Positions 44,810-44,891 of a DNA stretch of 64,000 nt are shown here, piece after piece (position 1 is the first letter of the stretch; each line of letters opens with the position of its first letter). The notes beneath the pieces were generated by a model. The model ran no database searches. It was not told where the DNA came from and saw only the letters and a program-made list of their open reading frames with translations. Location of the stretch: the sequence record PQ471515.1; one strand, 5' to 3'. The position numbers and the translations under genes were made by a program.

Positions 44810-44891
44810 CCGGGCGTATCTCAACGGTCTTCTAAACCGTCGTTAATCGAGTAACTGGAGTATGCAGGTTCGAGTCCTGTCGCCTGGGCCA
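44810..44891 (+). tRNA. D-armless tRNA-like RNA with TCT (Arg) anticodon loop
   Basis: Acceptor CCGGGCG/CGCCTGG plus GCCA, ACGGT-CTTCTAA-ACCGT, T-arm GCAGG-TTCGAGT-CCTGT; only 7 nt where the D-arm should be. Confidence 0.65.

Follow-up and report, generated by a model that had tools for sequence, protein, structure and literature searches.

The tRNA-like domain of tmRNA has no anticodon arm. The allo-tRNAs of Mukai from 2017 are said to combine an 8/4 or 9/3 acceptor/T-stem geometry with a long helical variable arm, while for the D-armless mitochondrial tRNA-Ser a model by Steinberg and Cedergren reportedly has pairing between the connectors lengthen the helix on the anticodon side. In D-armless mitochondrial tRNAs, the elbow contacts between D loop and T loop are lost and co-evolved mitochondrial factors are needed (PMC7609411, PMC11551756). 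According to a 2024 paper, every bacterial tRNA known so far is a cloverleaf, and natural tRNAs without one of the arms are confined to mitochondria (PMC11551756). An engineered D-arm-less tRNA, "mini HisT", is accepted by EF-Tu, the ribosome and a synthetase in evolved E. coli (PMC11551756). Viruses go unmentioned in a 2020 review of natural non-canonical tRNAs.

The subject of this analysis is an 82-nt element on the plus strand of a 64,000-nt stretch of DNA from sequence record PQ471515.1, which as a whole is called the window here; the element occupies positions 44810-44891. Sequence comparison makes it likely that the element is a working tRNA-Arg(UCU), encoded by the phage, whose secondary structure is not a cloverleaf; the codon that this copy would read is most likely AGA (Arg).

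The element and its surroundings

In several respects the element looks like any cloverleaf tRNA: it has a 7-bp acceptor stem with CCA, an anticodon arm of 5 bp and 7 nt with U33 and a purine at position 37, and a T arm (Table 1). The D hairpin, in which positions 10-13 pair with 22-25 to close the D loop, is missing; a 3-bp helix encloses the anticodon arm instead. The Rfam tRNA model RF00005 scores the element at 32.6 bits, above its gathering cut-off of 29, albeit with an alignment that puts 4 nt in place of 15 D-arm positions and treats 20 nt as an insertion. ARAGORN did not call the element as a tRNA, nor did it call a tmRNA anywhere in the window, and the element, with its 82 nt, carries an anticodon arm.

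The original prediction, a description of this RNA made from the sequence alone, was borne out on most of these parts. The discriminator G and the encoded CCA, the canonical T arm, the UCU anticodon in its loop and the 4-nt spacer after tRNA-Ser(UGA) were all found where it had put them, and the anticodon stem is indeed identical to that of the upstream tRNA-Ser. That 7 nt between the acceptor and anticodon stems replace a D hairpin agrees with the Rfam alignment, which skips the D-arm, and with the failure of ARAGORN to find the gene; the 23 nt between the anticodon and T arms were likewise confirmed. The acceptor stem, which had been called perfect, is not strictly so: of its seven pairs, six are Watson-Crick and one is G.U.

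Table 1 Features of the element and of its 5' flank (positions in the window)
Feature	Position	Strand	Evidence or remark
Promoter-like site: TTGGAA, 18-nt spacer, TG-extended TATAAT	44676-44705	+	10/12 match
Canonical tRNA-Ser(UGA)	44716-44805	+	ARAGORN; RF00005 60.1 bits; ends 4 nt before the element
Acceptor stem, 5' strand	44810-44816	+	Pairs with 44881-44887; compensatory changes at 7/7 pairs in 49 relatives
UAU joiner (U8, A9 and one extra U)	44817-44819	+	Invariant in type 1; 51/52 in type 2
Rewired D stem, 5' strand: CUC and A44823 (opposite C44848)	44820-44823	+	Covariation; RNAalifold
Anticodon arm: 5-bp stem, loop CUUCUAA with anticodon UCU (44831-44833), U33 and A37	44824-44840	+	
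7-nt bulge CGUUAAU, 3' of the anticodon stem and before the D-stem 3' strand	44841-44847	+	
Rewired D stem, 3' strand: C and GAG	44848-44851	+	Covariation; RNAalifold
D-loop-like joiner UAACUGGAGUAU	44852-44863	+	Likeness to the D loop AAUUGGAUA of UE-S1 tRNA-Arg
T arm: 5-bp stem, canonical UUCGAGU loop	44864-44880	+	G53-C61 equivalent invariant
Acceptor stem, 3' strand	44881-44887	+	Covariation
Discriminator G73 (44888) and encoded CCA (44889-44891)	44888-44891	+	

The locus is 100% identical to that of Escherichia phage Turkey3, an Asteriusvirus relative, and 93-99% identical to that of 121Q, PBECO4 and other Asteriusvirus jumbo phages. Most of these GenBank records leave the element unannotated, and that of 121Q labels it tRNA-Leu(taa). 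The promoter-like site lies just 5' of tRNA-Ser, and UE-S1 and 121Q share its -10 region; sites of this kind are no more numerous here than in shuffles of the region. This predicted promoter probably drives a co-transcript of tRNA-Ser and the element. A run of small ORFs begins about 20 nt 3' of the element. RNA-library contigs cover the locus, and such contigs show neither transcription nor RNA ends; one run of raw reads had 0 reads on the stretch and is hence uninformative on expression. One contig from a plant metatranscriptome, identical to the window over 44808-45000, starts 2 nt before the element, a contig end not being an RNA end.

Some further observations concern the neighbouring tRNA-like sequences. 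The anticodon stem that tRNA-Ser(UGA) shares with the element in this clade is ACGGU/ACCGU (window 44740-44760 and 44822-44842; L001:1616-1705). The tRNA-Ser of UE-S1, otherwise identical, has the fully compensated stem CUUGU/ACAAG. The shared stem could stem from patch gene conversion between the adjacent genes or be a coincidence. At 43808-43880 of the window lies a tRNA-Gly(UCC)-like sequence without D hairpin, with an anticodon stem of 7-8 bp and no GG motif. It did not reach E<=0.001 with the tRNA model in Turkey3, did not match the rewired-tRNA model, and could not be aligned with the canonical tRNA-Gly of 121Q or UE-S1; its architecture differs from that of the Arg element. A 92-nt tRNA-Ser called by ARAGORN at 47585-47676 (RF00005, 49.9 bits) has the anticodon ACU, with A34, which is unusual for bacteria and phages.

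Distribution of the family

Such RNAs had been presumed not typical of phages, a view contradicted by a blastn search with a 90-nt stretch, in which 244 phage records of GenBank proved to hold a copy of nearly full length. Copies are present in Felixounavirus (wV8), Vequintavirinae (Proteus phage Mydo), Stephanstirmvirinae (BASEL phage PaulScherrer, Bas60), the T5-like Klebsiella phage Roth37, where the copy is annotated as "tRNA-OTHER", and Streptomyces phage Stanimal. In all five of these phages, the copy lies among or beside tRNA genes. GenBank and IMG/VR yielded 49 distinct sequences of this kind (type 1) from unrelated phages; the IMG/VR pattern scans by which type-1 copies were added left the anticodon free. 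The matches listed for two loose IMG/VR patterns were almost all due to chance and lay in AT-rich coding DNA. CCA is encoded in 28 of the 49 type-1 sequences; it is present in the copies of enterobacterial phages and absent from those of actinophages (Streptomyces phages).

A covariance model built from type 1 picked up weaker paralogues in Stanimal and at two IMG/VR loci, and a motif derived from these paralogues, in which the base after GG was left free, gave 52 distinct sequences of a second subfamily (type 2). Type 2 has the same architecture and the joiner UAAYUGG-N-NACAU. Its bulge is the 4-nt UGAA instead of the 7-nt bulge, in which C, U and AA are conserved among type-1 relatives. Type-2 copies are found in Stanimal (OP021680.1, 74454-74533 and 91430-91509) and at IMG/VR loci L346-L423, many of them on huge-phage contigs of 100-550 kb. 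Altogether, the two subfamilies comprise about 100 distinct sequences from unrelated phage families and hosts. In a scan of 185,579 prokaryote species, each represented by one genome, only four true copies were found, all on small MAG contigs, and the family is therefore essentially restricted to phages.

In several GenBank records, a CDS for a "hypothetical protein" has been drawn over the element (L004:651-740; blastn matches H45, H50 and H51), and these are probably spurious ORFs. Locus L336 has a type-1 copy on its minus strand, at about nt 2176 of the reverse complement, that matches as far as GUAAU and is followed by unrelated U-rich sequence; this copy may be truncated or interrupted by an insertion. 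Genes for HNH homing endonucleases adjoin these tRNA clusters or lie within them (L005:692-1201 in Roth37; about 46999-47523 in the window). Such endonucleases are a possible vehicle for horizontal spread of the element among unrelated phages, which share about 90% identity.

A D stem rewired around the anticodon arm

The helix that encloses the anticodon arm is formed by CUC (44820-44822) and GAG (44849-44851). All three pairs are kept in each of the 49 distinct type-1 sequences, the first as CG or UA, the second as UA, GC, AU or CG, and the third as CG, GC or UA. The search patterns and filters used for type 1 left these columns unconstrained, and RNAalifold predicts the helix independently from the alignment. 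At the fourth position (44823/44848), 36 of the sequences have A.C or C.A, 12 have a standard pair and one has A.A. In type 2, for which the search constrained no helix, the same helix is paired at three positions in 52 of 52 sequences. Since this covarying helix is followed by the D-loop-like AAYUGGA and then by a canonical T arm, the D-arm is rewired, not lost: its stem closes around the anticodon arm, and the segment that resembles a D loop comes after that arm. AAYUGG in the joiner, which has the family form UAAYUGGAGUAU, resembles positions 14-19 of a tRNA, and the last U of the joiner may stand in for position 48.

The original prediction had called the element D-armless and had assigned the 23 nt after the anticodon arm to a variable region with a GUUA/UAAC hairpin. 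The first of these claims is refuted by the CUC/GAG pairs, which include part of the supposed variable region and are kept in every relative. The hairpin fares no better: its three inner pairs never vary, 8 sequences fail to form its outer pair and 7 others have a gap there, three U-to-C changes inside it are uncompensated, and the type 2 sequences cannot form it. A variable hairpin was therefore rejected as a candidate. Owing to this want of covariation, the base-paired helical variable arm that defines a type II tRNA is not supported either. As UUA and UAA never vary, a pseudoknot-like stack of the hairpin on the new helix is possible for type 1. The expectation that stems would be maintained by compensatory changes in relatives came true for the acceptor, anticodon and T stems, in which every pair is so maintained among the 49 relatives, and failed for the variable hairpin. 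That the RNA is a selected one and not debris, as had also been proposed, is upheld by the strong covariation and by the spread over many phage families.

Folding of the single sequence does not recover the CUC/GAG helix, and the structure model thus rests on covariation. The calculated energy is -20.3 kcal/mol with the new helix, -21.4 without it and -23.0 with the GUUA/UAAC hairpin. The CUC/GAG pairs have a probability of 0.004 in the single sequence, the proposed structure lies 2.8 kcal/mol above the minimum free energy, and the z-score of single-sequence folding is -0.61. The nearest-neighbour energies, which disfavour the new helix, count against the model, and the fold would need tertiary contacts. 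The invariance of UGGAGUAU in type 1 is partly forced by the search patterns. A linker-free IMG/VR pattern added at least two new true members (L265 and L291), both with UGGAGUAU.

Anticodons and identity bases

The anticodons of all 49 type-1 sequences are those of arginine tRNAs: UCU in 45, CCU in 2, UCG in 1 and ACG in 1. Every one of them keeps C35 together with U36 or G36 (NCU or NCG), and the discriminator, G in the window, is a purine in 46 of the 49 relatives. In bacteria, the identity set for arginine consists of A20, C35, U/G36 and A/G73, and that for isoleucine includes U20 and A73 among others (PMC9976931). When compared with the ArgRS set, the element has C35, U36 and G73, and A44859 follows GG as A20 does. 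By a mapping that we infer, A44859 would take the place of A20, the main ArgRS determinant.

Among the 52 type-2 sequences, the anticodon is Ile UAU in 20, Ile GAU in 8, CAU in 1, Arg UCU in 11, Arg ACG in 8 and Arg CCU in 4. The base after GG is A in all 23 sequences with an Arg anticodon, of which the discriminator is mixed (G, A or U), and U in all 28 sequences with the Ile anticodons GAU or UAU, of which the discriminator is A without exception. The base after GG tracks the Arg or Ile anticodon in the way of the position-20 identity base, and this correlation is the strongest evidence at hand for a joiner that acts as a D loop and for charging by cognate synthetases. When the collected loci were searched with a structural descriptor for other anticodons, no true match beyond Arg and Ile came up; the remaining three were evident false positives. 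The rewired Ile copy of Stanimal is an extra one, for canonical Ile(GAU) and Ile(UAU) tRNAs are present in this phage as well.

A probable stand-in for the canonical tRNA-Arg(UCU)

The tRNA inventory of the whole genome was taken from the Turkey3 record. Eight hits to the tRNA model were obtained in this genome, which correspond to the seven tRNAs called by ARAGORN and the element, and there was no other tRNA-Arg in the whole genome. In UE-S1 and others, which form a sister clade, a normal 77-nt cloverleaf tRNA-Arg(UCU) occupies the same slot, 4 nt after tRNA-Ser; no match to the rewired-tRNA model was found in UE-S1. A similar observation was made for the T5-like phage Stitch, where the tRNA-Arg(UCU) is canonical and the rewired-tRNA model gives no strong match. 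Conversely, canonical Arg(UCU) is absent from the five complete genomes checked, those of wV8, Mydo, Roth37, PaulScherrer and Stanimal. The first four of these carry 26, 23, 25 and 15 tRNAs, respectively, as well as the element. The canonical tRNA-Arg genes of Stanimal are UCG and ACG only, and its UCU and CCU decoders are both rewired.

Across 89 loci bearing the element, ARAGORN made six Arg(UCU) calls, of which three lie over the element, one is a divergent rewired copy and two are canonical; other common phage tRNAs reach 30-40 calls each at the same loci. The two canonical genes beside an element (L070 and L095) count against strict complementarity. Descent from a canonical tRNA-Arg(UCU) is suggested by the acceptor stem and T arm, which are nearly identical to those of the Stitch tRNA.

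AGA makes up 16.5% of the Arg codons, or 6.3 per 1000 codons, in the ORFs of at least 150 amino acids in the window. E. coli uses AGA at about 2 per 1000, and the codon is thus commoner in this phage than in E. coli. The role of AGA decoder, one of the two options raised by the original prediction, fits the Arg-only anticodons, the retained ArgRS identity bases and the complementary occurrence with canonical tRNA-Arg(UCU).

Proposed function and alternative explanations

The chain of the element runs from the acceptor stem through U8-A9-U, the first D-stem strand, the anticodon arm, the 7-nt bulge and the second D-stem strand to UAAYUGGAGUAU and the T arm. From the above comparisons, we infer its three-dimensional fold, processing, charging and decoding as follows. 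The D-like helix would stack on the anticodon stem to give about 9 stacked pairs, compared with 10 layers in the cloverleaf, and positions 10-13 would have their geometric counterpart in the strand that leads into the D-loop-like segment. The displaced GG, equivalent to G18 and G19, would dock on the canonical T loop, by which the L shape would be reached via a different path of the chain. The element would be co-transcribed with tRNA-Ser, after which RNase P would cut its 5' end and the encoded CCA would be exposed. Host ArgRS would charge the RNA via C35, U36, G73 and the A following GG, the A20 equivalent, and the charged RNA would decode AGA.

The other option of the original prediction was a nuclease decoy. 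A mimic of tRNA-Arg could serve as a decoy, sponge or inhibitor of a host factor that binds or cleaves tRNA-Arg, such as a colicin-D-like anticodon nuclease or another tRNA-targeting defence, and have no part in translation. The highly conserved anticodon loop and the unusual core would suit such a role, and much has been published on defences that attack tRNAs and on the tRNAs with which phages counter them (PMC10264068). However, one nuclease should fix one loop, while the family switches among four Arg anticodons, and type 2 alternates between Arg and Ile with the matching identity base at position 20. In addition, the element replaces the canonical AGA decoder and does not accompany it, and it retains the discriminator, CCA and T loop of a charged tRNA, all of which makes a pure decoy unlikely; if the RNA both decoded AGA and withstood a nuclease, this would agree with the tRNA-Arg explanation and not rival it. 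The location between tRNA-Ser and the run of small ORFs would also agree with an RNA processing or regulatory signal, for example RNase P or RNase E punctuation for the mRNA of the small ORFs, or with some other non-translational tRNA-like element. We regard this as very unlikely, as punctuation needs no conserved anticodon, identity bases or D-loop-like motif, and the element is found in many contexts within the tRNA clusters of unrelated phages.

Recoding by a mischarged tRNA, in which SerRS or another non-cognate enzyme would bring a residue other than arginine to AGA, draws on the long region 3' of the anticodon arm with G73, on the anticodon stem that the neighbouring tRNA-Ser of this phage has as well, and on the existence of animal mitochondrial tRNA-Ser(UCU/GCU) without a D-arm (PMC7609411). 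Yet covariation backs no helical variable arm, and the shared stem is the commonest of the family, occurring also in phages without such a tRNA-Ser neighbour, while the tRNA-Ser adjacent to the copy in PaulScherrer has a different stem. Given that the identity bases moreover change with the anticodon in the way that charging by the cognate ArgRS and IleRS would require, mischarging appears highly improbable. A decaying tRNA pseudogene, arisen by deletion of the D-arm and insertion in the variable region, could account for the failure of ARAGORN, the Rfam score just above threshold and the lack of annotation in most GenBank records; it is barely credible for an RNA whose two subfamilies, with some 100 distinct sequences from unrelated phage families and hosts, show compensatory changes throughout their helices. 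Readings as a SerRS substrate or type-II tRNA, as a tmRNA-like domain and as a pseudogene were rejected on the lack of covariation in the variable arm, the lack of a tmRNA call and the covarying helices, respectively.

Why a tRNA-Arg of this shape would be kept is a separate matter. A possible, rather doubtful explanation is that it represents a natural, phage-specific class of tRNA fold, maintained because its altered core goes unrecognised by a host factor that reads the D-arm or core of the canonical tRNAs. Such a factor might be a defence nuclease, a toxin or a quality-control pathway. That the rewiring gives resistance to a host factor targeting tRNAs is an idea made attractive by recent work, yet only a guess.

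Comparison with known systems

A description of the rewired class was not found in the full-text literature, subscription journals being mostly outside its coverage, and the class is apparently undescribed: a tRNA with a new secondary-structure topology. If charged and used, it would be a natural exception to the rule that bacterial tRNAs are cloverleaf, and one that works with ordinary bacterial machinery. It bears on how far the core of a tRNA can be rewired and still work, on how ArgRS and IleRS find position 20 in an altered chain topology, and on whether phage tRNAs diversify in structure, beyond their anticodon loops, under tRNA-targeting defences. Because standard tRNA finders miss or mislabel these genes, inventories of phage tRNAs undercount decoders of AGA, AGG and AUA. 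The scaffold could also seed orthogonal tRNAs. As the class is present in easily grown coliphages (Felixounavirus wV8, Bas60 or PaulScherrer, 121Q and T5-like phages), it can be tested directly.

The canonical tRNA-Arg(UCU) of Stitch and UE-S1 resembles the element in its anticodon loop, purine discriminator, CCA and AAYUGGA, and that of UE-S1 also in its slot. It differs by the presence of a D hairpin, whereas the D-stem strands of the element flank the anticodon arm, its D-loop-like segment lies at the usual place of the variable loop, and it has the extra 7-nt bulge. The tRNA-like domain of tmRNA and the allo-tRNAs are, like the element, non-standard tRNA-shaped RNAs, and those are charged by synthetases; unlike the allo-tRNAs, the element has a 7/5 geometry and no long helical variable arm. 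Mini HisT is synthetic, Y-shaped and without a D-loop substitute, while the phage class is natural, with its D stem and D-loop-like segment reordered. Animal mitochondrial tRNA-Ser(AGY/AGN), with the anticodon GCU or UCU, shares with the element the lack of a D hairpin, the short connector and an anticodon for the AGN box. Unlike these tRNAs, the phage class has a covarying 3-bp D-like stem, retains GG and the canonical T loop, and has the identity of Arg or Ile; the ordinary machinery of the bacterial cytosol is what it must work with.
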